The notes beneath the pieces are model-generated. The model was given only the letters and a program-made list of their open reading frames with translations. It ran no database searches and had not been told where the DNA came from. From positions 124,001 through 188,000 of the IMG/VR virus record IMGVR_UViG_3300046703_000335: 64,000 nucleotides of DNA; one strand, written 5' to 3'. Each line of letters starts with the position of its first letter. The first letter of the stretch is position 1. Positions 9,112 through 63,532 of this stretch are shown in pieces. Position numbers and translations under genes: made by a program.

Positions 9112-9121
9112 TATATTTCCT

Positions 9122-11757: not shown

Positions 11758-11759
11758 AT

Positions 11760-34306: not shown

Positions 34307-36724
34307 TTATCCCTGTATTCCAGTAGAACCCATTATCGCAAAAAGTTTTTTCAGAGTCACAGTACTACTTATACCCGTAGCCCCTATAATAGCACTTGAA
34401 AAAGCACTTAAATTCGAAATAGTATCATCACCAGATCCTGAGTTAGTAAATCTCAGTACCCAATTTGTAAATGATCCTGAAACAAAATTATTAGTATAAG
34501 AACCATGAACATATTTACCATCAATAGATATTACAAATTTATTACCATTAAATATAAATCGGACTTTAAGATCTGAAAATATCTCATCAGGTGTATGCGG
34601 ATCAGATATACTATAATTTATCTCATATGTATTTATGCCTGTCACATACCCATAAGTTATAACTGATAAAGATCTGTTTATCTTTATGTATGCACTATTA
34701 TCATTATTATTTATTTTTACCATTAAGTTATCTGATTTCACAGTAACAAATAGTTTTATATCTACATCTGTATTAAAACTAAATCCCCCCATTATATTCG
34801 AAGGGGATGTCAATGTTAGATTATTCATATCATAACTATAAGTTCCTACCCCTGTCCAAGACCCATCTCTAGCATTACTATAAAAAATACCACTCAGACC
34901 GATTTCATTAAATCTTTCTATACCTATAAGATTTATGCCTGTTACACCATGAAAAGAAGGGTAGTAACCTGGCTCCACAAGGATATATGGACTGCCATTC
35001 TGGAGTGCTCTATCAATAGTTCGGTAGGGGGATTCAAAAGTCCCAGTCCATAAATCATTACCATCCGGAGATGCATATATTAACCCTGTCTCAAAAGAAG
35101 GATGTGATGGATATATAATGACCACATCATTTCTTGTCCTATTACCTATAATCAAATTGCTATCACTCAGAGTCATTTCTTTACTTCTAAACCTACTATA
35201 ACTTGATCCAGTAGTATAAAAAGTATAAAGACCTGTTTCTCCATTTTGTGATGGGACAACATTTGTAGCTATATGTAAATCATTGACACCTGATCTCTGA
35301 TACCCTCTATCTGGAGTAGCATAAGGACCCGTTTCAGTACCCGGATAATCCTTATCGTACCCATATTCAGCGACATAATTTCCCAAAGCTGTTTCATTAT
35401 AATTAAACTCAAAAGCCCCTATATCTCCTGTAACACCCTGTATCCCTGTGGCACCTCTATGGAATAAGTCAAAATCTATATCACGATCAAATGGAGATAC
35501 ATTATCTCTGATACCTGTATAAGATGCAGTATAGTACCATCCCCCATCAATATTAACTTTCTTTACCCCTATCTCTCCATAGATATTATTCCACCTATCA
35601 AAATCTCCTCTATCGATATTTGGGGAAGAAAGCTGCAGTCTAAAATCCTCATTAAAAGGATCTCTATACATAGCAGTCTCACCGATATTATTCATACCAG
35701 TACTCCCAGTAGGAACAGATCCCCCCCACCATACGAGCACATCATCGAAATTATTATTTAAAATCTTTACAGGAGTATTGAAATAAACTCCAGTAGATAT
35801 CGGAGTACCTGCACTCGATATGCTATTAGAATCTACTCTACTATTCTCATCCCCGATATTACTAAGACTTATAGCCATACCAGGATCAATATCCCCTGCT
35901 TCTGAATACATTACCCTAACTATATCACCTATAGCAAGTTCTTGTGATAGTTGAAGACCACTCCATGAAACTATAGATCCTAAAGATATAACTGTAAAAT
36001 CCGTACCATAATTAAATGATGGTCCATTTACGATATTTACAGCAACGTCATATTCTCCATTATTTGTCGGTGAAGCAAAACCTGGGAGTTGTATTCTATT
36101 ATGGCTGATATCAAAAGCATTAATAGTCTTATATATTACTCTAAGATTGGTATCAGGAAACAAAATCGGGGGTAAATCTAAAGCCCCATAAATAGTATTT
36201 CCCCACAGATCTAATCTATCAACAGTAACTATGTCTATAGATTTTCGACCATTAGAAAAAACATTAGAATTTACACAGATTTCTTTTGCAGAATTAATTT
36301 TTATAGCTGATTGATGCTCATAGAAATAATTTCTATTAATTGAAATGTAATTTACGGAGTCTATATTTATTGCAATATCTACACTATTAAATCTACACCC
36401 ACGAACTATTGTTGAACCGACACTTAGATTATTTGCAGTTATTCCTGTGGAAATATTTTTAAATGTTAATCCTTCAATAAGACCCTGCATGTTTAATAGA
36501 GTTAAACTTCCCACTACTGGTGTAGCACCATATGCAGATTTAATTGTCAAATTTTTAGTAACAGTAAGATTTCCATAAGATACCCCATTACCGCTCTGAA
36601 GGACAATAACACCACCCTCATATACTTGTGTCAAAGCATAAGGAAGTGTCTTCACCGGAGAAAGAAGTTCTCCGGTGTTTGTATCCAAGCCATATAAAGA
36701 ATCAACGTATACGGTATAAAGCAT
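34307..36724 (-). CDS. Right-handed beta-helix (pectin-lyase-like) virion appendage protein
   Basis: DUF1565-like starts (VYVDS..G.D.N.G...SP.KT; YASPDGNDLWTGTFESPYRTI), beta-helix coils, DFRLQLSSPNIDRG...DIGAFEF. Confidence 0.75.
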   Translation of the reverse strand: MLYTVYVDSLYGLDTNTGELLSPVKTLPYALTQVYEGGVIVLQSGNGVSYGNLTVTKNLTIKSAYGATPVVGSLTLLNMQGLIEGLTFKNISTGITANNLSVGSTIVRGCRFNSVDIAINIDSVNYISINRNYFYEHQSAIKINSAKEICVNSNVFSNGRKSIDIVTVDRLDLWGNTIYGALDLPPILFPDTNLRVIYKTINAFDISHNRIQLPGFASPTNNGEYDVAVNIVNGPSFNYGTDFTVISLGSIVSWSGLQLSQELAIGDIVRVMYSEAGDIDPGMAISLSNIGDENSRVDSNSISSAGTPISTGVYFNTPVKILNNNFDDVLVWWGGSVPTGSTGMNNIGETAMYRDPFNEDFRLQLSSPNIDRGDFDRWNNIYGEIGVKKVNIDGGWYYTASYTGIRDNVSPFDRDIDFDLFHRGATGIQGVTGDIGAFEFNYNETALGNYVAEYGYDKDYPGTETGPYATPDRGYQRSGVNDLHIATNVVPSQNGETGLYTFYTTGSSYSRFRSKEMTLSDSNLIIGNRTRNDVVIIYPSHPSFETGLIYASPDGNDLWTGTFESPYRTIDRALQNGSPYILVEPGYYPSFHGVTGINLIGIERFNEIGLSGIFYSNARDGSWTGVGTYSYDMNNLTLTSPSNIMGGFSFNTDVDIKLFVTVKSDNLMVKINNNDNSAYIKINRSLSVITYGYVTGINTYEINYSISDPHTPDEIFSDLKVRFIFNGNKFVISIDGKYVHGSYTNNFVSGSFTNWVLRFTNSGSGDDTISNLSAFSSAIIGATGISSTVTLKKLFAIMGSTGIQG

Positions 36725-36742
36725 AACTATTCATTTCTATTA

Positions 36743-37075
36743 TTAATTTGTGTATAGCCAGCTTGGTTTGGAAGATATGCTAAAAGTACCCCCGCCACCA
36801 CCTCTCACAGTTGTAACCGGTTTACTCTCTGCTGAGCCATCCGCAAGATTCACTCCTGAACTGTTATCTACTCTGTCTCCAAGAGGATTACCAAACTTTG
36901 TGTCAGGAGACACACCACCACCAGTAGAATTACTTATAGGAATGTTTTGAAACAATTCCGGAGGTATGACACCACCACTTAGTACTTCTCCATCATTAGA
37001 GGAATAGGAAGCAAAATTCCCATTAATAATTACAATATTCTTATCTGTATAATTCTGCACTATTACTTTGTTCAT
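36743..37075 (-). CDS. Hypothetical G/S-rich protein
   Basis: 110 aa, in operon orientation with AAGGGG RBS. Confidence 0.55.
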   Translation of the reverse strand: MNKVIVQNYTDKNIVIINGNFASYSSNDGEVLSGGVIPPELFQNIPISNSTGGGVSPDTKFGNPLGDRVDNSSGVNLADGSAESKPVTTVRGGGGGTFSISSKPSWLYTN

Positions 37076-37126
37076 ACTAATACCCCTTTATGTGTTTATA
37101 CAACTACCTGTATTAATCAACTTAAT

Positions 37127-37651
37127 TTAAAAATTTGGTATAACTAAACTTGGATCATTCATATCTCTCTGTATCTGCCAATAGGTAGGATCTAAACCAG
37201 TTATTATATTTGATAATTTTTTTAGCTCTTCTAAATTTTCTTTAAAAGCTACAGACATAATTACCGTCTCACATCTACCCTTAACTGCATTAAATAGCTT
37301 AATGGCGCTATCGTAAACTCCCTCACCACGATATGCATCATGATATTCTTTAGTACCATCAAAGCTAATTCCTATCCTATCAACATGGTCAGCTATCTCT
37401 GGTCTATAAAAAGTTCCATTAGTAGTAACTCCTACTTTAAACCCTTTACTTTTTAGTATATCACAAATATCCGCTAAATTTGATATAGTAAAAGGTTCAC
37501 CACCAGTAATGTACACCCATTCTATTTCACCAGCTTTTGATAATATTGTTTCCAAACTTTTATCAATATCTATTATTGCGGTACTCTTTGCACAACATCC
37601 GGCGCATGATAAATTACAAGCATACGTAATTGGGAAAAGTATATGATTCAT
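37127..37651 (-). CDS. Minimal radical SAM enzyme
   Basis: CNLSCAGC (CxxxCxxC), ITGGEP, TTNGT, ISFDG...HDAYRG. No SPASM/twitch extension. Confidence 0.9.
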   Translation of the reverse strand: MNHILFPITYACNLSCAGCCAKSTAIIDIDKSLETILSKAGEIEWVYITGGEPFTISNLADICDILKSKGFKVGVTTNGTFYRPEIADHVDRIGISFDGTKEYHDAYRGEGVYDSAIKLFNAVKGRCETVIMSVAFKENLEELKKLSNIITGLDPTYWQIQRDMNDPSLVIPNF

Positions 37652-38224
37652 TTATACAGTCTCTATTGGTTGTTCGATCATTTTAAGCTCGTTAATCCAT
37701 TTTTGATGTAAGACCAATCCTGTAGAATATCGCCATTTATACATCGTAACAGCTTGCCAGTCTCGATAAAGATATGGAACCCATACATTACCCCCACCAA
37801 GTCGATGATGTCTTGACCAGGCTACCGAATAAGGTAACCCTACATCATCAATACCATCCTCAGAAGGGCACTCTATACCATCAATGTAATATCGCATCTC
37901 ACCATCACCAAGACATACATAGGTAAGTAAATGCCATTTCTTATCATCTAATGATATACCTGTATACTGTTCAATAGGTTTAGATTCAGAATTAGAAAAT
38001 TGTAATTTATAATCGTAGTCACCAGATCTTTTTATTTCCATTAGTATTGCCTGATCTGACAGTACTAAACCTCCCGAATCTGATACAGTCAACAAATACA
38101 CAGGGTATTCATCCGGGATCTGTATATCATAAATCCACCCCATACAAGTAAACTTATTAGCCTTCTTAATACTGGTGGGTTCTACAGTTACATATTTACT
38201 TTTTATGAGTGAGACTTCTGGCAT
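37652..38224 (-). CDS. LamG/concanavalin-A-like domain protein
   Basis: FTCMGWI...DDKKWHLLTYV...MRYYIDG LamG signature. Confidence 0.7.
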   Translation of the reverse strand: MPEVSLIKSKYVTVEPTSIKKANKFTCMGWIYDIQIPDEYPVYLLTVSDSGGLVLSDQAILMEIKRSGDYDYKLQFSNSESKPIEQYTGISLDDKKWHLLTYVCLGDGEMRYYIDGIECPSEDGIDDVGLPYSVAWSRHHRLGGGNVWVPYLYRDWQAVTMYKWRYSTGLVLHQKWINELKMIEQPIETV

Positions 38225-38250
38225 ACTAATCCTTGAATTTATATATCGAT

Positions 38251-38553
38251 TTAATAGTTATATACTGCTCTCAGGTATAAGATACCTGTTACACCATGAG
38301 AAGTGTTATTCATTACATCTTTTATATCCGAATTAGCAAGATTCAAAGCCAACATAGCTGTAGTACCCGGAACATTACTAAATGTAACTCCAAAATCGAT
38401 ACCATACCGCTGGGCAGGTCCATCAGTAGGATCTACAGCAATATCATAGGCACCATTGGGTCCAGTTGTCGGTGCTGCCCTTAACAGTATTAAGTCATTA
38501 GATAGAGGACTTACCATACCTGTCAAACCAAAATATTCAACTTCTATAGCCAT
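38251..38553 (-). CDS. Small putative virion surface protein
   Basis: 100 aa. DIAVD...GPAQRYGIDFGV resembles DVAVN...GPSFNYGTDFTV in the 805-aa protein. Carries GLTG and GVTG motifs. Confidence 0.55.
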   Translation of the reverse strand: MAIEVEYFGLTGMVSPLSNDLILLRAAPTTGPNGAYDIAVDPTDGPAQRYGIDFGVTFSNVPGTTAMLALNLANSDIKDVMNNTSHGVTGILYLRAVYNY

Positions 38554-38608
38554 GTGTATTTCACTTTATATGAACTTGTTTATGGAACGCCATTTATTAA
38601 TATTGCTT

Positions 38609-38624
38609 CATAAACAGATTATTA
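38609..38624 (-). promoter_or_regulatory. Degenerate late promoter motif
   Basis: Minus strand TAATAATCTGTTTATG, upstream of the 38553 start. Confidence 0.4.
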
Positions 38625-38633
38625 GAAAAAGTC

Positions 38634-38662
38634 TTGAAATACCCGATAATAAGTAGTATTAT
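38634..38662 (+). promoter_or_regulatory. Sigma70-type promoter for the nuclease-Mom fusion gene
   Basis: TTGAAA-17 nt-TATTAT, followed by GGAGG RBS and ATG at 38695. Confidence 0.65.
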
Positions 38663-38694
38663 TAATATTAAGACAACCATGCTATGGAGGATAT

Positions 38695-40830
38695 ATGACA
38701 GCAGCACAAAAAGGTATTACTTTGCTTTTATGGTCTGAACAAGAAGATACACTACTCAAGGAGCTATATTTAAAAACACCTAAAGATATAATATTAACTA
38801 AGTTAAACAGAACTTGGAAATCTATAAGATATAGGGCTAGTAGACTAAAGTTTAAACGAGACCCATCCATTATAAAACAGGATAATATAGAAGGTACTAA
38901 AAAAGCTATGCTTGAAAAATATGGTGTAGAATACTCTACCCTTCTACCGGCTATGAAAGAAAAAAGTAGACAAACCAATTTGAAAAAAAGGGGAGTAGAG
39001 TATCCTTCACAATCCAAAGAAGTTCGTGACAAGATAAAATTAGTAGTAAATGAGAGATATGGTGTAGATAATGTATTTCAGGCACAGAAAATAAAAGAAA
39101 AATCTGAACAAACTATTTTAAAAAGATATGGAGTAAGATATATAAACCAAAGTCCAACTATTCGAGAGAAAACAAAAGAAACAAATCTTGAAAGATATGG
39201 AATATCAAATACTTTTCAATTAACAGATAGGGTCGAAAAAGGAATGATTGAAAAGTATGGACAAAGAGTCCCACTTAATGTCCCTGAAATTGCTGAAAAA
39301 AAGAAAAAAACGAGTTTAGAAAAATATGGTGTTGAAGTAGCTTCAAAAAATGAAGCTGTAAAAAGAAAATTATCAGAAACTTTAAAAACTGCTGTCGTTA
39401 GAGAAAAAAAATATCAAGCATTAAAGAAAAAAGGCTCTTTTAATTATTCTAATGAAGAGCTTGCATTCGCTAATTATTTATTAATAGCTGATCCAGACCT
39501 TAAAACTCATCAGCTTCATCCTATAACAAAACATGTGATAGATTACTATATGCCCAGATATGACTTATGGGTACAATATGACGGAACTTATTGGCACGGT
39601 AAGGGAGAAGCAGTGCATACTGGACCTCAAGCCATATCCATAGAGAAGATAAAAGCAAAAGATATCTATCAGAACGAAAATATTCCAAATTTAATAAGAT
39701 TCTGGTCAGATGATGTTAATGAAGCTATAAAAAAAGGCAGCATATTTACTCTTATTGAAATAAAAATAAAAGAAAAGATAAATACTACTGAGGATATATT
39801 TGTGTGCCACCAGTATCGAAAAAAAATAGAACATTATACTGAAGACCGAGACAATTTACCATTTAACCCAGATAATATCAAAGCATCAAATTTTACGCTT
39901 ATAAAGGAGGAACTATCAACAGAGATCGTAGAGTTTATAAAAAAATATGAATGGTTAGAAACTGTTGGAGTTAATCCTAAATGGTGTTTCACAGCTCGAT
40001 ACAATGATAAACTTGGAGGAGTAGTCCTAATAAATGAACCTACTGCTTATTCAAAAATGCTGGGTAAAGATACCCCCATCTATGAAGCCCTTATACAAAG
40101 AGGTGCTACAGCTTCCTGGACCCCTAAAAACCTCGGAAGCAGACTTGTTATGTTCTCTTGTAAGTGGATGGTAGCTAATACCCCAAAACGAATCTTTGTA
40201 GGTTATGCTGATCCTTCTGCTAAAGAACGCGGCATTATCTATCAAGCATGTAATTTTGATTATTTAGGGGATAATTTTGGGAATAGCTACCTATACAAGC
40301 ACCCTGAAATAAATCGAACATTTACATCCCAATATCTAAAAAGAACATCAACATTTAGACGCTGGTGTCTTCTTAATAAAATTGAACTGAGAAAAGAATG
40401 GTTTAAAGAAAATGGGTTTAAGAATTTGGAGATTATACCTCATGAAATTAAAAATATGTGGTATCTCTGGATAAAAGATATAATAAGCAGTGCAGAAAGA
40501 ATAACTATAAGTAAAAAGATGAAATATGCTATTCTACTCTATAGAGATAAAAAAGACAGAAAAATACTTGAACCTTTAAAAAAATATGACAAATTTCCAT
40601 ACAATAAAATTTATAACACAACAAACCAGCTAACTCTCCGACCACGCGGAAAAAACAATCATGGCTTAACAGCAGATAGAAAAAATCCAGAAAAAATTGA
40701 ATTTATATTAAAAAATCATAGCACTATGTCCAGGTCAGTTATGGCCCTAGAGTTGAATGAAACTCAACGATGGGTAAAAAGACAAGTAAATAAATTAGTA
40801 TCTGAGAATAAGATTAAGCCAAAGAGATAA
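38695..40830 (+). CDS. Multidomain protein: HTH + KYGV repeats + Vsr/DUF559-like endonuclease + Mom-like GNAT DNA-modification domain + HTH
   Basis: About seven (K/R)YGV-type repeats. DYYMPRYDLWVQYDGTYWHG nuclease motif. FIKKYEWL...RGA...KNLGSRL...VGYADPSAKERGIIYQACNFDYLG matches the Mom-family motif. On the opposite strand to its neighbours. Confidence 0.75.
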   Translation: MTAAQKGITLLLWSEQEDTLLKELYLKTPKDIILTKLNRTWKSIRYRASRLKFKRDPSIIKQDNIEGTKKAMLEKYGVEYSTLLPAMKEKSRQTNLKKRGVEYPSQSKEVRDKIKLVVNERYGVDNVFQAQKIKEKSEQTILKRYGVRYINQSPTIREKTKETNLERYGISNTFQLTDRVEKGMIEKYGQRVPLNVPEIAEKKKKTSLEKYGVEVASKNEAVKRKLSETLKTAVVREKKYQALKKKGSFNYSNEELAFANYLLIADPDLKTHQLHPITKHVIDYYMPRYDLWVQYDGTYWHGKGEAVHTGPQAISIEKIKAKDIYQNENIPNLIRFWSDDVNEAIKKGSIFTLIEIKIKEKINTTEDIFVCHQYRKKIEHYTEDRDNLPFNPDNIKASNFTLIKEELSTEIVEFIKKYEWLETVGVNPKWCFTARYNDKLGGVVLINEPTAYSKMLGKDTPIYEALIQRGATASWTPKNLGSRLVMFSCKWMVANTPKRIFVGYADPSAKERGIIYQACNFDYLGDNFGNSYLYKHPEINRTFTSQYLKRTSTFRRWCLLNKIELRKEWFKENGFKNLEIIPHEIKNMWYLWIKDIISSAERITISKKMKYAILLYRDKKDRKILEPLKKYDKFPYNKIYNTTNQLTLRPRGKNNHGLTADRKNPEKIEFILKNHSTMSRSVMALELNETQRWVKRQVNKLVSENKIKPKR

Positions 40831-40882
40831 GTACTTATCAAAAAGCATGTTAAGGATTATTTTTATATAATCCTCTTGGTCC

Positions 40883-41797
40883 TTAACTCCAACCCCCCCT
40901 TGCACCGGACACGAAGTTTCTACGGCTTTGGACCCCCGGACGTGAATACGGTCCCAGGGCCGAACTGATACCTATACCGTAACGAGGCTGTTTTAGTCCT
41001 ATAGCAATCTTTATAGATCTCTTAGCTTGGTCAAGAAGCTTATCGTATTCACCTTCAAAAGAATCTCTCATTGATTGATACTTAGATGATTTCTCTATAT
41101 TAAGAGATACACCACTGATGCTATAATCATATTCGTCAACTATCCAATTCAAAGCAAGAGCCCCGCAAGCCAGTGATGCGGACTTAAGAAGAATAACAGC
41201 TCTCCATCTATCTGGAGTTTGAAATAATGTTATACCTGTCACCGGAGGAGCCGTATTGAAATAATCAACAGCCATAAGTAGATACTCATAGAGTTCATAA
41301 TCTTCCCACACGTAACCAAATACCTGAGCTTGTGCTTGTATGAACTTTTCACTCGCCGGGGGACGAAATCTATAATTACGATCGGGATTATTATCCCTTA
41401 GCATAATTCTTAACCTTCTTACGAGCAACTGCTCAGAATCAACACTATTAATATCTGTCTTTACATCTTTAGCAACAACATTAAATTCCTGAACAACTTG
41501 AATTGTAGGAGATCCTGAAGTTTCCCTAAAATTCCATCGTACTAGCCAGTCTCCGATATTTGCATCTAAGGGTATGGTAATATTCACATAATATTGACCT
41601 ACCCCCATGGTAGCGGGGATTTGATCTGGAGGCCCAATAAGAACTTCAACACCTGTAGTATAATCAAATATAGAAAATCTAATATAATAGGGATCTACCA
41701 AATTTCCGATATTATCCCGGATTAATATTTTCAAATCTTCTTGGGTAAGAGTTTGTCCCGGTTGGTATGCTACTGACATATTAAATTCCTCGATCAA
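40883..41797 (-). CDS. Head-tail adaptor/neck protein with N-terminal Ig-like domain
   Basis: LVRRLRIMLRD...WEDYELYEYL..AVDYFN...EYDYSISGVSLNIEKS, a gp6/gp13-like adaptor pattern. Confidence 0.65.
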   Translation of the reverse strand: MIEEFNMSVAYQPGQTLTQEDLKILIRDNIGNLVDPYYIRFSIFDYTTGVEVLIGPPDQIPATMGVGQYYVNITIPLDANIGDWLVRWNFRETSGSPTIQVVQEFNVVAKDVKTDINSVDSEQLLVRRLRIMLRDNNPDRNYRFRPPASEKFIQAQAQVFGYVWEDYELYEYLLMAVDYFNTAPPVTGITLFQTPDRWRAVILLKSASLACGALALNWIVDEYDYSISGVSLNIEKSSKYQSMRDSFEGEYDKLLDQAKRSIKIAIGLKQPRYGIGISSALGPYSRPGVQSRRNFVSGARGGWS

Positions 41798-41987
41798 TAT
41801 TATTTAGATACTTGTCAAGAACTTTCCTTACAGAGTCTTCTTTAAGGAATGAAAACTTATGGAACTGTTCCTGAATATATGGAGTAATCTTACCTGACTC
41901 ATCTTTGAGAAACTCCCCATTTTCAGATCTTATATAGGATGATATTCGAATCATGTCCCTGAAGACAGGATTTTTTTTACGTTGCAT
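41781..41987 (-). CDS. Hypothetical protein (68 aa)
   Basis: GGGAG RBS and promoter motif upstream. Overlaps the next gene. Confidence 0.55.
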   Translation of the reverse strand: MQRKKNPVFRDMIRISSYIRSENGEFLKDESGKITPYIQEQFHKFSFLKEDSVRKVLDKYLNNIDRGI

Positions 41988-42024
41988 AAGATTGTCTCCC
42001 TATAATATTACTGTAAGGATTTTA

Positions 42025-42040
42025 TATTATTAGATTATTA
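42025..42040 (-). promoter_or_regulatory. Putative late promoter motif
   Basis: Minus strand TAATAATCTAATAATA. Confidence 0.55.
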
Positions 42041-42051
42041 GCTCTAAAATT

Positions 42052-42456
42052 TTAGTACAATATCATGAAAGCATTAATATCGAAGTGATTTTCCATAGCT
42101 GACATTTGCTGATGAATACCATCCGAAGTTACTGAAAATTCCACAGTGGTCAATTGTGTAGCAGAGGTCTCCAAAGCCCTATAATACCAGCGTATCTCAT
42201 AAGTCCCAATCTTCCATGTATCCTCAATAATAAAATTGGGTTTTATCTTTCCAGTATCTAAAATATCAGGTAACCGATTACGAATACCAATTGGCATAAA
42301 TTGATTTGTAAGAAGATGAACAAACCCAATATCATATCTTATCCAATATGGAGTATATGGAAAAGTCTGGTATGGGTAGGCATTATAATACCGCGCATAC
42401 AAATTAAGGATAAGATCTGTTTGTCCTATCCGATGTCCTTGTATAAAACTTTCCAT
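42052..42456 (-). CDS. Ig-like protein paralogous to the adaptor N-terminal domain
   Basis: PYWIRYDI...IGTYEIRWYYR versus PYYIRFSI...IGDWLVRWNFR in 40883..41797. Confidence 0.6.
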   Translation of the reverse strand: MESFIQGHRIGQTDLILNLYARYYNAYPYQTFPYTPYWIRYDIGFVHLLTNQFMPIGIRNRLPDILDTGKIKPNFIIEDTWKIGTYEIRWYYRALETSATQLTTVEFSVTSDGIHQQMSAMENHFDINAFMILY

Positions 42457-42520
42457 AAGGAGTCTCCAGACAAAGGAACCGATATATGCAAGATCAGTTC
42501 TTTAACGGAAGGGCACAATC

Positions 42521-42979
42521 TTATTCTTCGTTATCTTCTTCTTCGATCTCAAGTACTAACTCAACAGTAAACTTGATCACCTTCTTATCCTCATCAATAT
42601 CTGGCATATAATCAACCTGGTCTTCCCAGATATAATCATCAAAATCCTGATTCAAATCTGATATATCAAGATTAGCATATTTTTCTTTAAGAAAGGATGA
42701 TAGTTTTGGATTGATCATTTTTTTAAGATCACCATCATGATCATCAACCCAATCCTGAAGTATTCTATTAAGTACCCTATAACTGTCCGGTGGTATACCA
42801 TCATAAGTTATATGGATATCTGCCCATACTTCAATATTTGCTGAGAATTCCTCATCATTGTTTTCTACAACATTTTCTTCATCGATATCAATGTTTTCAA
42901 ACTCAATAAAAGAGGCTTCTTTTAGCTTAAAATTTTCAGAAGCTTTTTTAGCCATAAAATCAACAACAGATGCTCTCAT
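42521..42979 (-). CDS. Highly acidic protein, probable internal head protein
   Basis: About 28% D+E by manual count. N-terminal KKAS and KEAS sites. Confidence 0.55.
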   Translation of the reverse strand: MRASVVDFMAKKASENFKLKEASFIEFENIDIDEENVVENNDEEFSANIEVWADIHITYDGIPPDSYRVLNRILQDWVDDHDGDLKKMINPKLSSFLKEKYANLDISDLNQDFDDYIWEDQVDYMPDIDEDKKVIKFTVELVLEIEEEDNEE

Positions 42980-42981
42980 AA

Positions 42982-43182
42982 TTAAAATCCATGTTTGCTG
43001 TTAGTAAAATTAGCATCATTTATTCCCGTATAACCCATATCCCACATTACAGGCTCAAGTGTCCCCATACCTGTTATGCCACCGGTTTCAGGGGTCACTT
43101 TATCAATGTTATAAAATACATTGATTTCATATGGTCCTATAGCAGGGGATATAGTCATCATTTTACCTTGATATACATCCAT
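42982..43182 (-). CDS. Small TG-motif-rich protein
   Basis: 66 aa with ETG, GITG and GYTG. Tightly packed in the operon. Confidence 0.55.
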   Translation of the reverse strand: MDVYQGKMMTISPAIGPYEINVFYNIDKVTPETGGITGMGTLEPVMWDMGYTGINDANFTNSKHGF

Positions 43183-43190
43183 ATTAATTC

Positions 43191-43493
43191 TTATCCTTTT
43201 TTAATTTCATTCCCAATTATGCTGGCACAAAGAGACTTTAATGACTTTATATTGTCAGCATAAGTAAGAGCATCAACTGGACATTGTCTTAAAAAGTATG
43301 CTGTTTTCAACTTTTCTACCACATCTGAATTTTCAAAAAAGAAAAATACTTTTCTTTGGTCCTTAGTGGTATTTTTTATTTTACAACCAGAGGTTGCAAA
43401 TAGAGCTGCAAGATAAAGGTCACACGTCTTATACCCATCCCGTGTATAAATCAAATCACCGTGTATATTATCGTTCATTTGATCACCTCTCAA
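43191..43493 (-). CDS. DUF5659-like protein
   Basis: TCDLYLAALF...G...KVFFFF...YADNIKSLK pattern. Start probably at the second Met (GAGG RBS). Confidence 0.6.
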   Translation of the reverse strand: MRGDQMNDNIHGDLIYTRDGYKTCDLYLAALFATSGCKIKNTTKDQRKVFFFFENSDVVEKLKTAYFLRQCPVDALTYADNIKSLKSLCASIIGNEIKKG

Positions 43494-43528
43494 TATTTTT
43501 TATTATAGATGTTATTTTAAATTTAAAC

Positions 43529-43560
43529 AAAAATTGCCGAGGTCGATGTAACCCCGGCAA
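43529..43560 (-). terminator. Rho-independent terminator
   Basis: Minus strand TTGCCGGGGT-loop-ACCTCGGCAA then a T-run. Confidence 0.65.
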
Positions 43561-43591
43561 CCTCAAAAATCATCAAGTCTTAAAAAAAGTC

Positions 43592-44017
43592 TTAAGCATT
43601 ACCGTAATAATACCCAGTTGAACCAGCTGCACCAGTTGAATACTTATCATTAGCCAGAAGATCCATGTAAGTATTGGTGAATCTGGAAGTACCTGTATCA
43701 CCGATATCTTGACGAGGGACTTCATCAGCTGAAGTGTATGCACCTTCAGTAAGAACAAATGGTGCACCATTATGGTCTGTGAAGAGTGAGTTACTTGCTG
43801 CTGTCGAGAAATACTTCAGGACACCCTTTGCAAGACTATACAGAACGTTATCTGTAAGTTGAATAACTTTTGTTTCTCCCCACACGATATATTCATCTTG
43901 ACCGCTGAGGTAATTACCTTCCTGGGCACCGCCAAGCTGACTTCTTTTGTCAAAATCAGTAAAATAAATTTTACCTACGTTTGTGCCAAAATATTGTACA
44001 CGTAGTGTATCAGCCAT
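43592..44017 (-). CDS. Putative abundant virion (decoration/surface) protein
   Basis: Own promoter motif, strong AAGGAGG RBS and terminator. GDTG and STGAAGSTG motifs. Confidence 0.5.
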   Translation of the reverse strand: MADTLRVQYFGTNVGKIYFTDFDKRSQLGGAQEGNYLSGQDEYIVWGETKVIQLTDNVLYSLAKGVLKYFSTAASNSLFTDHNGAPFVLTEGAYTSADEVPRQDIGDTGTSRFTNTYMDLLANDKYSTGAAGSTGYYYGNA

Positions 44018-44090
44018 AAAAGCCTCCTTAGACTAAATCTTTTTGTTTGTATATAAAACCCTTTATCAGGGATCTTCAATAAAGGTAGCA

Positions 44091-44106
44091 TATTAAGAGA
44101 TTATTA
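44091..44106 (-). promoter_or_regulatory. Putative late promoter motif (consensus)
   Basis: Minus strand TAATAATCTCTTAATA. Confidence 0.65.
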
Positions 44107-44113
44107 TCTATGT

Positions 44114-44151
44114 AAAAAAAAAGGCCACTCATTTTATTGAGCAGCCTTTTT
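44114..44151 (-). terminator. Terminator after glycosyltransferase
   Basis: Imperfect stem AGGCTGCTC...GAGTGGCCT followed by a long T-run on the minus strand. Confidence 0.55.
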
Positions 44152-44174
44152 ACATACACGTTTAATAACTGATA

Positions 44175-47100
44175 TTATTTTATGCCAAATTCCTTAAGCC
44201 ATCCATCAGCTATTTTTCCCCAATTATACTCCTTCATCTTAGCATAAGCCCTATCAGCCCACATAAGCCTATAAGACTCATCAGAAAGCATCCTTATAGC
44301 TTCTGCTACGAATCTATTAACATATGAAGTGGGATATTCACCATTGCGACTTAATCCATCAGGAGAAAGAAGTATCCCTGCTGATCCTACAGTAGTTTGC
44401 AAACCGGCGAAGTCAGTACTTACAATAGAACACTTAGATAATCCTGCAGCAACTGCTGTTATACAAAATGTTTCACTGAACCAGCTCGGATACAACCAAA
44501 TCTTTGATTCTTTCTCATATTCAGCCAATTGCTTCTTACTCACTCGATCAACATACTTTACACCAGGCTGATTCATTAGATTTTTTATATCTGCTATAAA
44601 TTTCAGTCCCTCGACATCCTTCCGCATACGAGCCATGGATTCCCAATTAAAAAAGCCATAAGCTACGACAAGTTCAAAATCAGGGATCTCTTTTCTTATT
44701 TGAGGAACCATCTTTAAAAGCTGGTATAAACCTCTATCGGGGCTTGAAGAATAAACAGCTTGATTCTTCTTTTTATATTTGTCAACATCGCTATATAGAC
44801 TGAAATCCTGACCATTTGCAGTAAGGAACATCTTATCACTTATAATACCATGGTGACTCATAATAAATTCTTTATGCCACTCTGACAAATAAGCGTACTT
44901 ATCTACACGCCAAGTCATAATATCATAACTTTTATCTGGGGATAACCAAATATCATGAAATATGATATAGTTTCTTAAAGAATGAATATTTAATTTTAAT
45001 GGTTCCGTCGATCGTGACGCTATGAAATAATCAATAACATCATATTCTACATCAGCCTGCATCTTAGTATGATCACGATAAACAACATCCCCAACCTTTT
45101 CTCCGACATTATCAAAGACCGGATCAAGAACGATATCATCTTTACTGTCTGATAGTAAATCATTATAAATAGTGGTCTCAAAACCTTTTTTTACAAATTC
45201 CCGAGCAAGATATGATGCCCAAGTTTCTGATCCTGCCATACCCTCATCTACTTTTTGTTTATTCCAAGGCTCCCAAGCTGGACCTGTCCAAATTACTACT
45301 CGGGGTTTATTCCATTTTGCCCTATATTTCATATGATTTTCAGCATCTTCTTTATTATAAGATTCTCTATTCTCTTCCTGGTAGGCACCTCGGCTTATTC
45401 CGCCATAATGAAAAACAAAAGAATCTATAGCTTGACCTGTCACATATCCAAATTTTGATAATCGATTCATAAGGTCAAGATCTTCGCACCCATTAAGGAA
45501 GAGAGGATCAAATAAGCTTACTTCATTTATTGCACAGCGAGCAAAAATAGTAGCGTATGCTGCCACCCATCCCTGACGGACAAAAACATCCTTATGCTTT
45601 TTGTTAGAATACTCCATGAATTTATAGAGTTCTTCCACATAAGGTTTAATCTCATCAATTTTCATAGCTGGGTGAAGATCAATCTTTGATTTTTCTAAGA
45701 GCATCGAATAAGATGGTTTACCTGGAGCGTCATGCAACCAGCCTCTGTCACAATTAGACAATACCCCACAAGAAGCTAATCGATCAACAGTCTCCATTTT
45801 ATTTACAAGGCTAGTAAGCCAGCACTTTGACACTATAACATCTGAATTCAAAATTACAAAATATTTTGTATTAGAAGCTTTAATACCTGCGTTACAAGTC
45901 TCAGAAAAAGATAAGCGCTTATTTGGGTCACCTATAACAGTAATTCCTTTTAATGTCAGCAAGTAATCCCATGTCTCTTTATTACTACCTCCATCTGAGA
46001 TAATGATGTGGAAAGGGTATAGGGTATTCATGAGAATAGAGCTTACACACATCTTAAGATATTCAACGTTATTATAGTTAGCAATAATGATATCTACTAT
46101 GGATCTATTTTTTACATCTATCTTTTCGGGAGGATCCGGAAATTTCATCTGATTATTAATAAGCTCTGTTAAAGTGCTAATCCACTGACTAGCAATAACT
46201 GGTAGACTATACTCTCCTATAGAAGCTTTTCCAGCTTCTCCTATCTTCTTTCTCACGGTACTATCTTTCAACTTTATGAGAGCATTTTTCCACTCTTCTT
46301 TAGTATCACATATAAAACCGTTTTCTCCATCCTTGATAATTTCTTTGTATGCCTGAAGTGGAGAACAAAGAACTGGGAGACCAAGAGCCATTGCTACAGT
46401 AGCTTTCACAGAACTCTTTGCTGGTTGAACCTCAACACGTTGAGGGCACAATACCACATCACAGGCATTCATTACATCGACCCAGCCTTCCTCTGTCCAG
46501 CGATGAGTAGCATTATCCCATTCTGTACATAATACTATTTCATAACCTGCTTCTTCAATTGTATCTTTTAGATATTCATTTACAAGCCAGGAATTTCCAC
46601 CCATACCCACATAAACTGCCTTAGGCTTTAGATATCGATTTTCATATACTGCTTTATCAGATGTTTTCTCCACTGCATCCTTAAGGACTACTGTCTTCAT
46701 AAAACCATGTTCATTAGTAATCTCTTTAAGCTTGGTAGAACAGCAGGTGATAAGATCAACCTCTTCCATACATTCCCGTTCAAACGGAAAATTGAATAAA
46801 GCCTCACAATGATCAAAGACACATTTTATATCTGAGGATTTAAGATGCTTCATTATTTCAAGATCTTCTTTACCAAACTGAGTAAAAATAGCTACAGTTG
46901 CATCTCCTACCTTGTTTCTTGTTTCATAGATATTATTACCGTAGTAATTAGAAATGATTGTGCTATCAATACCCATATCTACCAGTTGCTGGCAGATATT
47001 AAACCTTCTTAATCGGATAGAAGGATTCGTTAGATCAAGTGTGGGAATAAACCACACTATTTTAATATCGCGAATTTTATTCAATCTTATGTCACAAAAA

Positions 47101-48296
47101 TCGAGGTTATTCCGGAGAACACTCATATTAAGATCATTTTTCTGCAAAAATTCTTTTAATTTAGAAATGTCTTCTTCCTGGAGCACCATTCCTTTTGACA
47201 AACGATTCATTTCGATATTCGTAATCTTAAGAAGTTCGCTCATCTGTTCATTACCGGGTTTATGCGTAAGAGCAAGTGTACAATATTTTACTACACTGTC
47301 ATATTCTTTTCTGTTGTAATAAATAAGAGCCAGTTTAGCTGCTGGAATAAATCCATAATAGTCAATTATCTGAGACATTCCTCCTTCAAGCTTTTTATTA
47401 AGAGCTTCTTTATAATATGATACTGCGGTGTCTGTATCATTCTCTTGCTCAAAGATATTTCCAAGAACCACGTAATTCTCAGCATAAATGCTATTGAATC
47501 TAATACCTTTTAGTGCATAATTTTTTGATGAGGAATAATCAGATTTTTCAAAATAGTATCTTGATAATTTTATACATGCTGTAGTAAGATTATCCGCAAA
47601 ATCAGCCCCCTTTTTTATATACGGATCAAGTACCGATATTGCTTTTTCCCACATTCCAAAATCAGCCAGTTCTTTACCATAATAAAATTTTATTCGCTCT
47701 GAACAATCTCCCGTTTCATATACTTTTTTGAGAGCCTCTATATTGCGAGCGGGATTATGTACTCTAACCCTATAATGATCAATATTGATATTTTCCCGAT
47801 GTAATCTATTGGGGGGGACATCCAAATTCATATACTCGTGTATGGGGTCATGCCATTTTATATGCTCACAATTTTTTACTATTCTTTCTCTAGGGAGAAT
47901 TAGTACTGGAGCATCCTTCTCATCATGGCTATATACGTAGTTAAGAATTATAATATCCCAAGCACTTATCTTTGGCTTCAATACCTGCAGTCTCATATAC
48001 TCTGAAGGCCTCAAAACATCGTCAGAGTCTAACCACATGATATATTGAGATGTATTATTACTAAAAGAGAAGTTTCTCGCAGCTGAGAAATCAGAAATCC
48101 ATTTAAAGAAAAATGTCTTAGCACCATAACTTTCAGCTAAAGACTTTATCTCTGGGTCCTCTTTTTCCATAGCAAGAGTTATTACTATCTCGTCAAATAG
48201 TTCACCTTGACAACTTTTAAGACATCTATCTAAAACATCCTTATCATCAGGACCTACAATAATATTCAAACCCAATAAAGGGGTGCGTATACTCAT
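44175..48296 (-). CDS. Multi-domain glycosyltransferase (GT2-TPR-GT4-GT2-GT4)
   Basis: GT2 #1: DFSAARNFSF, WLDSDD, PIHE. TPRs. GT-B #1: KSSVKATVAMALGLPVL. GT2 #2: DIIIANYN, ILNSDVIV, EDLDL. GT-B #2: YSSSPDRGL, YPSWFSETFCITA. Confidence 0.9.
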   Translation of the reverse strand: MSIRTPLLGLNIIVGPDDKDVLDRCLKSCQGELFDEIVITLAMEKEDPEIKSLAESYGAKTFFFKWISDFSAARNFSFSNNTSQYIMWLDSDDVLRPSEYMRLQVLKPKISAWDIIILNYVYSHDEKDAPVLILPRERIVKNCEHIKWHDPIHEYMNLDVPPNRLHRENINIDHYRVRVHNPARNIEALKKVYETGDCSERIKFYYGKELADFGMWEKAISVLDPYIKKGADFADNLTTACIKLSRYYFEKSDYSSSKNYALKGIRFNSIYAENYVVLGNIFEQENDTDTAVSYYKEALNKKLEGGMSQIIDYYGFIPAAKLALIYYNRKEYDSVVKYCTLALTHKPGNEQMSELLKITNIEMNRLSKGMVLQEEDISKLKEFLQKNDLNMSVLRNNLDFCDIRLNKIRDIKIVWFIPTLDLTNPSIRLRRFNICQQLVDMGIDSTIISNYYGNNIYETRNKVGDATVAIFTQFGKEDLEIMKHLKSSDIKCVFDHCEALFNFPFERECMEEVDLITCCSTKLKEITNEHGFMKTVVLKDAVEKTSDKAVYENRYLKPKAVYVGMGGNSWLVNEYLKDTIEEAGYEIVLCTEWDNATHRWTEEGWVDVMNACDVVLCPQRVEVQPAKSSVKATVAMALGLPVLCSPLQAYKEIIKDGENGFICDTKEEWKNALIKLKDSTVRKKIGEAGKASIGEYSLPVIASQWISTLTELINNQMKFPDPPEKIDVKNRSIVDIIIANYNNVEYLKMCVSSILMNTLYPFHIIISDGGSNKETWDYLLTLKGITVIGDPNKRLSFSETCNAGIKASNTKYFVILNSDVIVSKCWLTSLVNKMETVDRLASCGVLSNCDRGWLHDAPGKPSYSMLLEKSKIDLHPAMKIDEIKPYVEELYKFMEYSNKKHKDVFVRQGWVAAYATIFARCAINEVSLFDPLFLNGCEDLDLMNRLSKFGYVTGQAIDSFVFHYGGISRGAYQEENRESYNKEDAENHMKYRAKWNKPRVVIWTGPAWEPWNKQKVDEGMAGSETWASYLAREFVKKGFETTIYNDLLSDSKDDIVLDPVFDNVGEKVGDVVYRDHTKMQADVEYDVIDYFIASRSTEPLKLNIHSLRNYIIFHDIWLSPDKSYDIMTWRVDKYAYLSEWHKEFIMSHHGIISDKMFLTANGQDFSLYSDVDKYKKKNQAVYSSSPDRGLYQLLKMVPQIRKEIPDFELVVAYGFFNWESMARMRKDVEGLKFIADIKNLMNQPGVKYVDRVSKKQLAEYEKESKIWLYPSWFSETFCITAVAAGLSKCSIVSTDFAGLQTTVGSAGILLSPDGLSRNGEYPTSYVNRFVAEAIRMLSDESYRLMWADRAYAKMKEYNWGKIADGWLKEFGIK

Positions 48297-48469
48297 GCGT
48301 ACACCTCACGTATATTTTCAAGTCCTGTAAATCCTTCAAATTTCTTTCTATTAATATAGTCATCAATTGCACGTCTTATAATCTCAGCACGAGGTACCCC
48401 CGTAAGTTCAGATATTACTCGAAGACCATGTATCTCACCATCGGTAAGATGAAAATTCACTCTTTCCAT
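48293..48469 (-). CDS. Ribbon-helix-helix (CopG-like) regulator, 58 aa, not in ORF track
   Basis: MERVNFHLTDGEIHGLRVISELTGVPRAEIIRRAIDDYINRK... with AGGAG RBS. ATGA overlap with the glycosyltransferase start. Confidence 0.85.
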   Translation of the reverse strand: MERVNFHLTDGEIHGLRVISELTGVPRAEIIRRAIDDYINRKKFEGFTGLENIREVYA

Positions 48470-48483
48470 TAAAAACTCCTATA

Positions 48484-48512
48484 TATAGGTAAGTACCATA
48501 TACTTACCTATA
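48484..48512. promoter_or_regulatory. Perfect 12-bp inverted repeat, putative RHH operator
   Basis: TATAGGTAAGTA-ccata-TACTTACCTATA between the promoter motif and the RHH RBS. Confidence 0.65.
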
Positions 48513-48519
48513 GAAAAGA

Positions 48520-48535
48520 TATTAAGAGATTATTA
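48520..48535 (-). promoter_or_regulatory. Putative late promoter motif (consensus)
   Basis: Minus strand TAATAATCTCTTAATA. Confidence 0.65.
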
Positions 48536-63447: not shown

Positions 63448-63516
63448 GCTTGTCCTCCTGTGTCAATTTATTTATGAAGTTCTAATGAACTTGGTTGTTT
63501 TCAGAGAAAAAACAGA

Positions 63517-63532
63517 TATTAAGAGATTATTA
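63517..63532 (-). promoter_or_regulatory. Putative late promoter motif (consensus)
   Basis: Minus strand TAATAATCTCTTAATA, upstream of the scaffold. Confidence 0.65.

Follow-up and report, generated by a model that had tools for sequence, protein, structure and literature searches.

A Four-Domain Glycosyltransferase Encoded by a Jumbo Phage

We analysed a stretch of 64,000 nucleotides (the window; positions 124,001 to 188,000) of the viral record IMGVR_UViG_3300046703_000335, a 210,408-bp contig with a G+C content of ~34% in which almost all genes lie on the minus strand. Between window positions 34307 and 48535 it encodes a glycosyltransferase (GT) of 1373 amino acids (aa) and several proteins rich in Thr-Gly (TG) and GxTG motifs, which together make up a candidate system for the O-glycosylation of phage proteins. 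The segment is placed, in the direction of transcription, directly upstream of a contractile-tail module (window 1-26,532) with a 977-aa sheath protein, baseplate-like proteins and a giant open reading frame (ORF) of ~3400 aa that runs off the left end. In total, 74 kb of the 210-kb genome were examined. The same DNA was found in peat and freshwater-sediment metagenomes from many studies, whereas the metatranscriptome runs listed included none with the locus. The GT gene had no megablast match in 50,697 phage records, and tblastn of the gene or protein against phage records gave only partial matches of at most 36% identity, so the phage has no close cultured or GenBank relative. It is an uncultured low-GC jumbo myovirus.

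An earlier note on this DNA had described the 1373-aa protein as a single GT2-TPR-GT4-GT2-GT4 enzyme (TPR, tetratricopeptide repeat). Both the Pfam and PHROG domains and the invariant residues agree with that description:

44175-48296, minus strand: four-domain glycosyltransferase, 1373 aa in a single ORF, GT2-TPR-GT(B)-GT2-GT4 by Pfam and PHROG
47589-48281, minus strand: GT domain 1, residues ~6-236, GT2/GT-A, GmaR/SunS-like, with an invariant DxD (D90/D92/D93)
47184-47588, minus strand: TPR repeats, residues ~237-371, Pfam TPR_1/2/7/8, with consensus TPR and OGT TPR matches
46149-47099, minus strand: GT domain 2, residues ~400-716, GT-B/GT1-type (Pfam Glycos_transf_1/Glyco_trans_1_2), without a classical E-x7-E
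45312-46127, minus strand: GT domain 3, residues ~724-995, second GT2 (Pfam Glycos_transf_2 at 736-861)
44190-45299, minus strand: GT domain 4, residues ~1000-1369, GT4, with E1275-x7-E1283 (Pfam Glyco_transf_4, phrog_2170)

Among 18 homologues with identities of 45-82%, all four GT domains hold invariant residues, namely D90/D92/D93 in the first GT2 domain, P618-Q619-R620, K627 and S628 in domain 2, N817-S818-D819 in the second GT2 domain and E1275-x7-E in the second GT4 domain. The protein has no transmembrane segment, with no 19-residue window reaching transmembrane hydrophobicity. When a profile of the family was compared with all solved structures (PDB), residues 6-193 of domain 1 matched GmaR, the O-GlcNAc transferase of Listeria flagellin (E 1.2e-27), residues 6-314 matched the sublancin peptide S-glycosyltransferase SunS (E 5.9e-21) in an alignment that reaches the helical repeats, and domain 1 also matched the glycocin GT 7msk (E 4e-16). 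The PDB matches of domains 2-4 were generic GT4 and GT2 enzymes, including BshA-like and PglA-type GT4 at residues 633-714 in domain 2 and chondroitin synthase (E 4e-14) and GalT1 (E 3e-11) in domain 3. No DNA-acting GT was present among the 46 PDB matches of the profile at E ≤1e-4. The similarity of domains 2-4 to GTs of lipid-carrier assembly is that of generic GT2/GT4 only and far below the NCBIfam cut-offs; an NCBIfam name for the enzyme was rejected, as every match fell far below its cut-off. PHROG places the pieces of the GT in the category 'moron/auxiliary metabolic', and databases name its homologues 'involved in cell wall biosynthesis'. On these matches we propose domain 1 as a putative initiating protein O-glycosyltransferase and the TPR repeats as the module that may bind the acceptor.

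The full four-domain architecture occurs in more than 100 protein clusters, with full-length homologues of 42-82% identity on contigs of up to 469 kb, and the phage group that bears it inhabits peat, freshwater and sediment. More distant jumbo relatives retain only GT2-TPR or GT2-TPR plus GT4, which makes the GT2-TPR module the constant core of the family. In four relatives (L019-L022, at ~6170-13100; loci are given L numbers and homologous proteins P numbers throughout), the four parts are consecutive separate genes in the same order, of 516, 145, 424 and 357 aa in L019-L021 and 515, 145, 402 and 388 aa in L022. Inteins interrupt the GT of other relatives at ~position 88, beside the domain-1 DxD (L002), and at ~position 1276, within the domain-4 E-x7-E (L004, L010, L016, L018), as is expected where catalytic sites are conserved. 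These inteins are ~390-420 aa long and occur at the two sites in ~10% of homologues (P0007, P0011, P0013 and P0014 included). The GT of L016 is split into ORFs of 558 and 1260 aa.

TG and GxTG Motifs Are Enriched in Neighbouring Proteins

The proteins in which the motifs accumulate, and the regions that carry them, are:

34307-36724, minus strand: 805-aa fibre/tailspike-like protein, with a Pel9A-like beta-helix, a TG-dense linker, a second beta-helix (DUF1565) and a C-terminal ConA-like lectin/carbohydrate-binding module (CBM) fold
34310-34330, minus strand: C-terminal tail GSTGIQG of the 805-aa protein, two terminal collagen-like triplets, predicted local distance difference test (pLDDT) score ~52
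38251-38553, minus strand: 100-aa protein with 3 TG and 2 GxTG, which stands alone and is paralogous to residues 193-255, the insertion domain, of the 805-aa protein
42982-43182, minus strand: 66-aa protein with two conserved G-Φ-T-G sites
43592-44017, minus strand: 141-aa protein directly downstream of the GT, with a conserved N-domain, a variable tail and a conserved end GxTGYYYGN
8512-9111, minus strand: first 200 residues of the giant ORF, 6 TG against 1.5 expected (p 0.005), 2 GxTG

The TG and GxTG counts that the earlier note had given for these five proteins all proved exact, and comparison with composition bore out the excess, which is beyond chance, conserved and at the protein level. 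Expected numbers were obtained by shuffling each protein (1000 shuffles for the 805-aa protein). For the 805-aa protein, 6.6 TG and 0.65 GxTG are expected; it has 18 and 7, respectively, and for neither did any of the 1000 shuffles score as high. The 100-, 66- and 141-aa proteins each have three TG, by itself only a marginal excess, and two GxTG (p = 0.003, 0.004 and 0.014, respectively). Beyond its N-terminus, which is kept in orthologues at 58-93% identity, the giant ORF is slightly depleted, its remaining ~3200 residues holding 7 TG against 12.6 expected. A collagen-like C-terminus of this ORF was considered and rejected, since its ~3400 aa are free of G-X-Y runs. Five proteins within positions 34307-48535 account for 14 of the window's 22 GxTG. 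The codons at the sites vary (ACA/ACT/ACG/ACC and GGA/GGT/GGG/GGC); the signal is thus one of the protein, and a DNA-level motif behind the TG excess was rejected for that reason.

The bare TG that the earlier note had taken as the sequon gave way to a longer unit. Across 192 TG sites in four families, Gly stands at -2 in 51% and at +4 in 26%, and a mini-collagen G-Φ-T-G(-x-Q) fits the sites better. The longest G-X-Y run in any window protein, five triplets (GATGIQGVTGDIGAF), lies in the 805-aa protein, where GATGIQGVTGDIG is the sole five-triplet run of the window and which ends in GSTGIQG; all other runs are of three triplets or fewer, and the window's proteins have no long unbroken G-X-Y region of the BclA type, in which Y is often Thr. 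Motifs such as GATGIQGVTGDIG and GSTGIQG read as miniature copies of a collagen-like (G-Φ-T-G-x-Q)n repeat.

The earlier note had also taken the TG-rich proteins for putative surface proteins, and their position and predicted folds fit: they lie in the neck/fibre region of the structural module, and the 805-aa protein is modelled as a tailspike-like beta-helix with a lectin domain. Its AlphaFold2 model (pLDDT 84) has a lower-confidence TG-dense linker and a C-terminal ConA-like lectin/CBM66-type sandwich, and Foldseek relates it to CBA120 TSP2, DUF1565 phage proteins, ConA-like lectins and CBM66. The homologues carry Pel9A-like beta-helix and NosD Pfam domains. Neck-like genes flank the 805-aa gene, which is upstream of the sheath gene. 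The protein thus joins a predicted right-handed parallel beta-helix to a carbohydrate- or receptor-binding domain within a structural module, as phage tailspike and fibre proteins do.

The 100-aa protein aligns with the insertion domain of the 805-aa protein at an hhalign probability of 94.6% (E 7e-8). Homology between the 141-aa and 100-aa proteins was rejected (hhalign probability 0.4%). The TG sites of the 141-aa protein are T108, T128 and T134, with T108-G109 nearly invariant, and its gene follows the GT in 15 of 22 GT loci. Its AlphaFold2 model is poor (pLDDT 45, tail below 50), and the Atlas search with this protein returned noise, with scores of at most 0.68. Orthologues of the 66-aa protein, down to 33% identity, retain 2-4 GxTG. 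The suggestion that these are dedicated small carrier proteins is speculation; bearing on it are the paralogy of the 100-aa protein to a subdomain of the 805-aa protein and the poor model of the 141-aa protein.

Collagen-like Genes Accompany the Glycosyltransferase in Relatives

All ORFs of 22 viral GT loci were scanned for an excess of GxTG. In 12 of the 22, and in L109 and L111 besides, collagen-like proteins with 40-180 GxTG are encoded within a few kb of the GT. They consist of alternating G-Φ-T and G-x-Q triplets in runs of up to 188 triplets, and include a protein of 1546 aa with 180 GxTG in L007 (18347-22987), one of 870 aa with 100 in L010, and proteins of up to 3261 aa with 143 in L019-L022; L008, L009, L011, L012, L015 and L017 also have such neighbours. 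In L109, collagen-like proteins of 1443 and 1087 aa lie on both sides of the GT, together with a sugar epimerase, and in L111 a Pfam Collagen protein lies upstream of it. The position of the collagen-like gene, upstream or downstream of the GT, varies by lineage, as do the non-collagen domains. In a maximum-likelihood tree of the GT, collagen-like neighbours occur in every deep branch, and the window's clade is a derived group without them. This GT beside a collagen-like gene is the sgtA-bclA3 arrangement in phages. Adjacency of the GT to an acceptor-type gene is thus seen in relatives, and the window has only short GxTG units in neighbouring proteins.

L109 (NCBI GCA_030650065.1, JAUSEY010000306.1) is a 102-kb contig labelled as a Nitrosarchaeum metagenome-assembled genome. 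Its synteny is phage-type, and besides the GT and the collagen-like genes it has DnaJ and an IS605 OrfB/Cas12f-like gene; it probably derives from a jumbo phage and was wrongly binned with an archaeal genome.

We then compared loci with and without the GT, using 80 loci around the conserved 304-aa gene described below, of which 12 carry the four-domain GT and 58 have no GT in the flank. All 12 syntenic GT loci have GxTG-enriched ORFs (pooled 257 against 47), whereas in the 58 loci GxTG occurs at about the expected frequency, save for two with giant collagen-like genes. Around this gene, the 141-, 66-, 100- and 805-aa families are found only where the GT is present. A collagen-like gene lies near the GT in 14 of 24 GT loci, compared with 2 of the 58 syntenic GT-less loci (Fisher p 8e-8, a value that ignores kinship).

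An independent sample comprised 120 viral loci picked only by a GxTGxQ DNA pattern (L114-L233), with at least 120 such stretches. Among the matches listed, a GT2-TPR(+GT4) gene abuts the collagen-like gene in L125 and L201, a GT2-TPR gene is convergent with it at a distance of 2 bp in L215, and in L154 the two are 3.4 kb apart. Collagen-like (GxT-GxQ) coding repeats are common in themselves, the stretches of this sample coming from viral contigs of all sizes, giant-virus bins included.

Conservation across Homologues and Clades

Among 49 homologues of the 805-aa protein, the most distant at 33% identity, most have 14-26 TG (5-10 expected) and 5-12 GxTG (~1 expected). Thirteen TG columns are kept in at least half of 38 homologues (339, 342, 403, 426, 432, 465, 497, 546, 560, 595, 624, 783 and 801). 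With these columns masked, the ratio of observed to expected TG in the family is still 1.56, with the remaining sites scattered across 99 rare columns. The ending F[AG]IxG[SA]TG[IL]Q[G] is kept in most of the 49, and homologues without a GSTGIQG-type ending (P0155-P0158) have just 1-3 GxTG.

Two clades of GT-bearing loci were compared: the near clade, which is that of the window (L001-L004, L016, L018), and the far clade, a deeper one with collagen-like neighbours. In the near clade, pooled GxTG counts exceed expectation in all four families (43 against 4.3 for the 805-aa, 11 against 0.6 for the 100-aa, 11 against 1.3 for the 141-aa and 12 against 0.8 for the 66-aa protein). In the far clade the corresponding counts are 1 against 1.6 for the 805-aa, 0 against 0.1 for the 100-aa and 4 against 0.8 for the 141-aa protein, and the TG sites of the 100-aa protein, present in the near clade, are absent or deleted. 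Three control families of neighbouring genes (DUF5659, an acidic 152-aa protein and the 304-aa protein) have no GxTG at all. These counts indicate a joint rise of the motif, within one clade, in proteins that are unrelated to each other. Two conditions that the earlier note had set for refutation came out in favour of its proposal, in that the enrichment exceeds chance and that syntenic loci without the GT have neither the enrichment nor the TG-rich proteins. The far clade has the GT without a TG excess in its 805- and 100-aa homologues.

Operon Leader, Promoter-like Motif and Neighbouring Genes

Around the GT and the TG-rich proteins lie the following features:

37652-38224, minus strand: 190-aa ConA-like lectin (Laminin_G_3) protein, between the 100-aa and 805-aa genes (Pfam 33.8 bits, cut-off 27.6)
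40883-41797, minus strand: 304-aa conserved protein, likely a head-tail adaptor or neck protein, true start probably the ATG at 41779
42052-42456, minus strand: 134-aa protein, homologous to the N-terminal domain of the 1546-aa collagen-like protein of L007
44090-44106, minus strand: promoter-like 17-mer, exact copy, upstream of the 141-aa gene
48293-48469, minus strand: 58-aa ribbon-helix-helix (CopG-type) protein, stop overlapping the GT start (ATGA)
48519-48535, minus strand: promoter-like 17-mer, exact copy, upstream of the 58-aa ORF and the GT operon
63516-63532: promoter-like 17-mer, exact copy, upstream of the gene at 62440-63447

The putative late motif that the earlier note had remarked ahead of the GT is the recurring promoter-like 17-mer TAATAATCTCTTAATAT, which has 14 matches with at most 3 mismatches in place of the 2.4 expected, mainly ahead of minus-strand genes; looser copies stand ahead of the sheath and neck genes. 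The 58-aa protein that leads the operon matches Pfam RHH_1 at 29.5 bits (cut-off 20.5), and its gene is kept upstream of the GT in L002-4, L010, L016 and L018. Its two TG are probably ordinary loop residues of the ribbon-helix-helix fold.

Language-model leads, and no more than leads, liken the flanking proteins of 304 and 459 aa to head-tail adaptor and T4 neck proteins; for the 304-aa protein the Atlas leads are gp13, Mu gp36 and adaptor families, at scores of 0.82-0.91 that serve as a lead only. Its identity is 60-86% in GT loci and 42-50% in more than 60 GT-less relatives. The 134-aa protein matches the N-domain of the L007 collagen-like protein by blastp (32% over 107 aa, E 5e-9). Residues 11-112 of the 304-aa protein resemble the 134-aa family (27% over 111 aa to L006 20669-21148, E 2e-6), and its N-terminal ~100 residues also resemble the N-domain of the L007 protein; this common N-domain may be a shared attachment domain. 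The 190-aa lectin-like protein is kept in L003, L004, L016 and L018.

Two further genes interrupt the module. A 711-aa Mom-like gene (38695-40830, plus strand), one of few plus-strand genes locally, fuses DUF7487 (homing-endonuclease-like, E 1e-32) to a Mom-like DNA-modification domain and is inserted among the neck genes; it occurs in 6 of the 22 loci and is present in L112. A 174-aa radical-SAM protein (37127-37651, minus strand; Pfam E 8e-15, with a weak QueE-like PHROG match) occurs only in L001 and L002, and its gene looks like a recent insertion between fibre-module genes. Both are variable, mobile-looking insertions. Between the 66-aa and 134-aa genes, all GT loci encode the 152-aa protein (42521-42979, minus strand), which is extremely acidic, with ~1% Thr and ~1% Gly, and may be a chaperone, a scaffold or a DNA mimic. 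Two paralogues with an N-terminal FmdB-type zinc ribbon (Zn_ribbon_8) are encoded at 26672-27151 and 48565-49017 (both minus strand), one just upstream of the sheath gene and the other just upstream of the GT operon, and both positions are kept in relatives (L112).

Other Genes of the Window

A 336-aa actin-fold protein (30167-31177, minus strand; Pfam Volactin E 1.4e-61, with a weak MreB match) is encoded at a syntenic position in relatives too, with neck genes on one side and sheath genes on the other (L112 15918-16955, L113 11036-13147, both loci with distant homologues of the 805-aa protein); a LAGLIDADG-bearing intein interrupts the L113 homologue. Actin-like proteins are unusual within phage structural modules. 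The C-terminal 2H phosphoesterase of a 426-aa protein (52245-53525, minus strand) matches 2'-5' RNA ligase and Acb1 models at their cut-offs, and the protein may, by this similarity, be an anti-defence nuclease for cyclic nucleotides, Acb1 acting against the cyclic-oligonucleotide-based antiphage signalling system (CBASS). The genome is rich in selfish elements. A free-standing HNH endonuclease (28686-30044, minus strand; phrog_559, E 2e-96) sits amid the structural genes, and an 860-aa protein with LAGLIDADG/HNH and DNA-methyltransferase matches (56884-59466, minus strand) may be an intein-bearing methyltransferase.

A Candidate Protein O-Glycosylation System and Its Alternatives

From domain homologies, motif statistics, conservation, gene linkage and fold, all of which the analysis shows, we infer a scheme for the identity of the acceptors, the linkage to Thr, the sugar, the order in which the domains act and the presence of the acceptors in the virion. 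We give an even chance to the proposal that this is a phage system for protein O-glycosylation, in which a SgtA/GmaR-like module and three extension domains act on the Thr of G-Φ-T-G(-x-Q), carried by collagen-like fibres in most relatives and by dispersed copies in the window's clade. The 1373-aa protein would be a soluble, cytoplasmic, phage-encoded enzyme. Its GT2-TPR module would attach the first sugar to Thr, by analogy a beta-linked N-acetylhexosamine or hexose from a UDP-sugar, with the TPR repeats gripping the acceptor protein, and the GT-B, GT2 and GT4 domains would then lengthen this sugar to a short oligosaccharide. That four active sites build one oligosaccharide, as the earlier note had it, is conjecture, and the second of the four is the one in which the E-x7-E motif is missing. 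The ancestral acceptors would have been collagen-like (GxT-GxQ)n fibre proteins encoded beside the GT, and in the window's clade the unit would persist as short, mostly loop-located copies in proteins of the neck/fibre module. The likeliest acceptors would be the 805-aa protein, C-terminal tail included, the three small proteins (100, 66 and 141 aa) and the N-terminal part of the giant ORF. The module is best placed at the neck or fibres, and with its proteins incorporated into the virion the outcome would be appendages decorated with glycans. The likeness of domain 1 to protein and peptide GTs, the recurrent linkage of the GT to collagen-like genes, the persistence and joint gain of the motif, the lack of a transmembrane segment, the location of the GT in the neck region and the promoter-like motif that it shares with the 141-aa, sheath and neck genes argue for this proposal.

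Several observations weigh against it. The window's 805-aa protein owes its excess wholly to the 13 conserved columns (5 TG remain against 4.7 expected once these are masked), and a purely structural motif would give the same result. The far clade has the GT, yet its 805- and 100-aa homologues show no TG excess, so the dispersed motifs are dispensable and no general requirement of the enzyme. The individual p-values of the small proteins (0.003-0.014) are modest. In the 805-aa protein 14 of 18 TG Thr are in coil, yet Gly is in coil in 77% of cases regardless; because Gly is in coil in any case, the secondary-structure placement of the sites does not discriminate. The 74 kb examined contain no collagen-like gene. 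Collagen-like genes also occur with no GT in the flank (L089 and L097, the latter with no GT within ~3 kb upstream of its collagen-like genes), collagen-like proteins as a class often have Thr at the Y position, and ~95% of the collagen-like loci sampled, among the matches listed, have no GT2-TPR gene nearby. The co-occurrence statistics rest on related genomes, and a single change on the GT tree explains the label. Finally, GT domains 2-4 resemble GTs that build polysaccharides.

A bolder version of the proposal is possible but doubtful. Here the all-in-one 'assembly-line' GT of a widespread jumbo-phage family would serve a collagen sequon, G-Φ-T-G-x-Q, that in the window's clade escaped from the fibres and was seeded as a short portable tag in neck/fibre loops, termini and small proteins, and the phage would in this way pick which parts of its virion are coated with glycans, amounting to a transplantable O-glycosylation tag system.

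The conserved columns and the far clade also feed the alternative that survives best, which we judge unlikely all the same. It holds that true collagen-like fibres, or other targets whose genes lie elsewhere in the 210-kb genome (74 kb of which have been seen), are all that the GT acts on, and that the dispersed GxTG are no sequons and serve a structural purpose, as glycine turns, as remnants of collagen-like sequence or as contacts with collagen-like fibres. Gly-rich sites lie in loops anyway, and the 13 columns account for the window protein's excess in full. Against this, the motif was gained jointly in three unrelated families, in a clade that has no collagen-like neighbour; the residual excess over 99 rare columns lies outside the conserved set; the conserved terminal GSTGIQG has no obvious structural role; and the sites copy the G-Φ-T-G-x-Q unit, which is more than a turn.

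The kinship of domains 2-4, closest to chondroitin synthase, GalT1, PglA, BshA and Eps/Tua-type GTs, bears on a second, distinctly unlikely alternative, namely that the enzyme makes or alters a polysaccharide or glycolipid during infection (host capsule, lipopolysaccharide, wall glycan or phage exopolysaccharide), to exclude other phages or mask receptors, and that the TPR repeats serve localisation and not the choice of acceptor. The PHROG category and the 'cell wall' names of homologues agree with it, as do the sugar epimerase or formyltransferase genes near some of them. However, the best matches of domain 1 are all protein or peptide GTs, the enzyme has neither a transmembrane segment nor an initiating transferase of the lipid-carrier type, and it sits in the neck module, shares its promoter motif with structural genes and is recurrently linked to collagen-like genes. 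Among the neighbours of the GT there were no Wzx/Wzy/ABC-type or phosphoglycosyltransferase matches.

It is more improbable still that the GT serves as an effector of takeover or anti-defence by modifying a host protein, whether flagellin-like, from a pilus or S-layer, or regulatory. GmaR does act on flagellin, and TPR modules bind many proteins, but nothing ties this enzyme to a host target, its conserved linkage is to phage collagen-like and fibre genes, and four fused GT domains suit a defined glycan on an abundant structural acceptor. Glycosylation of phage DNA as a hypermodification against restriction, which the Mom-like and radical-SAM genes within positions 34307-48535 might bring to mind, we regard as scarcely credible, since those neighbours are variable (radical-SAM in two loci, the Mom-like gene on the opposite strand as a homing-endonuclease-like fusion in 6 of 22), no DNA glycosyltransferase appears among the 46 PDB matches at E ≤1e-4, a TPR region with a GmaR/SunS-type GT-A is an architecture for protein acceptors, and the annotated genes of the window, many others being unannotated, include none for hydroxymethyl-pyrimidine synthesis.

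Actinobacteriophages are so far the phages in which enzymes encoded by the phage itself have been shown to glycosylate the virion. Should the proposed O-glycosylation of phage proteins hold true, jumbo phages of a large group that is common in the environment would glycosylate their fibres by means of one self-contained enzyme. This would have a bearing on the encounter of these phages with host surfaces, on their survival where polysaccharides abound, and on the question of why viruses so often have Thr-rich collagen-like proteins. Triple helices can gain stability from glycosylated Thr, an example being the cuticle collagen of tube worms. A compact enzyme and a short peptide tag would also offer a tool for cytoplasmic O-glycosylation of recombinant proteins, and the core GT genes whose role jumbo-phage metagenomic surveys have left open would gain a testable function.

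Comparison with Known Systems

GmaR and the SunS/ThuS-type enzymes are the best solved-structure matches of domain 1 and, as proposed for the phage enzyme, act on a protein or peptide in the cytoplasm. Their acceptors differ, being Ser/Thr of flagellin for GmaR and Cys/Ser of small peptides for the SunS/ThuS type, they have no extension GT domains, and GmaR is in addition an anti-repressor. Among giant viruses, multi-domain GTs of chloroviruses act on the capsid protein, and collagen-like proteins of mimivirus are glycosylated. By description, the likeness lies in virus-encoded, host-independent multi-domain GTs that act on virion surface proteins, collagen-like ones included; the difference is that these are viruses of eukaryotes with other GT families and linkages (N-linked in PBCV-1 Vp54, hydroxylysine-linked in mimivirus collagen).

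In actinobacteriophages, virion proteins are modified by GTs of the phage, capsid and tail-tube subunits bearing the glycans at their C-termini, and this glycosylation changes immune recognition, according to Freeman et al. 2023 as cited in PMC12619734. Compared by description, the 805-aa protein too ends in a conserved putative acceptor tail. The actinobacteriophage GTs are, however, separate small genes beside capsid genes in high-GC siphoviruses, whereas here one four-domain enzyme is encoded in the neck module of a low-GC jumbo myovirus.

The 'moraphages' are uncultured aquatic/freshwater jumbo phages with four core GT orthogroups and DnaJ (PMC12619734). The paper leaves the function of these GTs open and has no mention of collagen-like proteins. 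The lineages were compared by description: DnaJ lies near the GT in L109 and L110, and the four separate GT genes of L019-L022 may correspond to the four core orthogroups. Our literature searches turned up the actinobacteriophage precedent and this survey, and no account of phages in which a fused four-domain GT2-TPR enzyme goes with collagen-like proteins.

The closest parallel is that of Clostridioides difficile SgtA and BclA3, which the earlier note had invoked, and accurately so: the first ~370 residues of the phage enzyme are GT-A plus TPR, and domain 1 groups with GmaR and SunS. SgtA, a 358-aa protein with a GT-A domain and four TPR, has its gene directly upstream of bclA3, and the Thr that it modifies with beta-O-GlcNAc lie in the GPT collagen-like repeats of BclA3 (PMC7157674). 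By SgtA's description, the phage enzyme begins in the same order, GT-A (GT2) and then TPR, and in its relatives the gene likewise lies beside that of a collagen-like protein with Thr at the Y position. SgtA has one GT domain, whereas the phage enzyme has three further fused ones; BclA3 presents long GPT runs, whereas the window has isolated units of 1-5 triplets in globular proteins; and one system belongs to spores, the other to phages. Taken together, the locus is a well-supported candidate for a system of the SgtA/BclA3 type in phages, in a new form.

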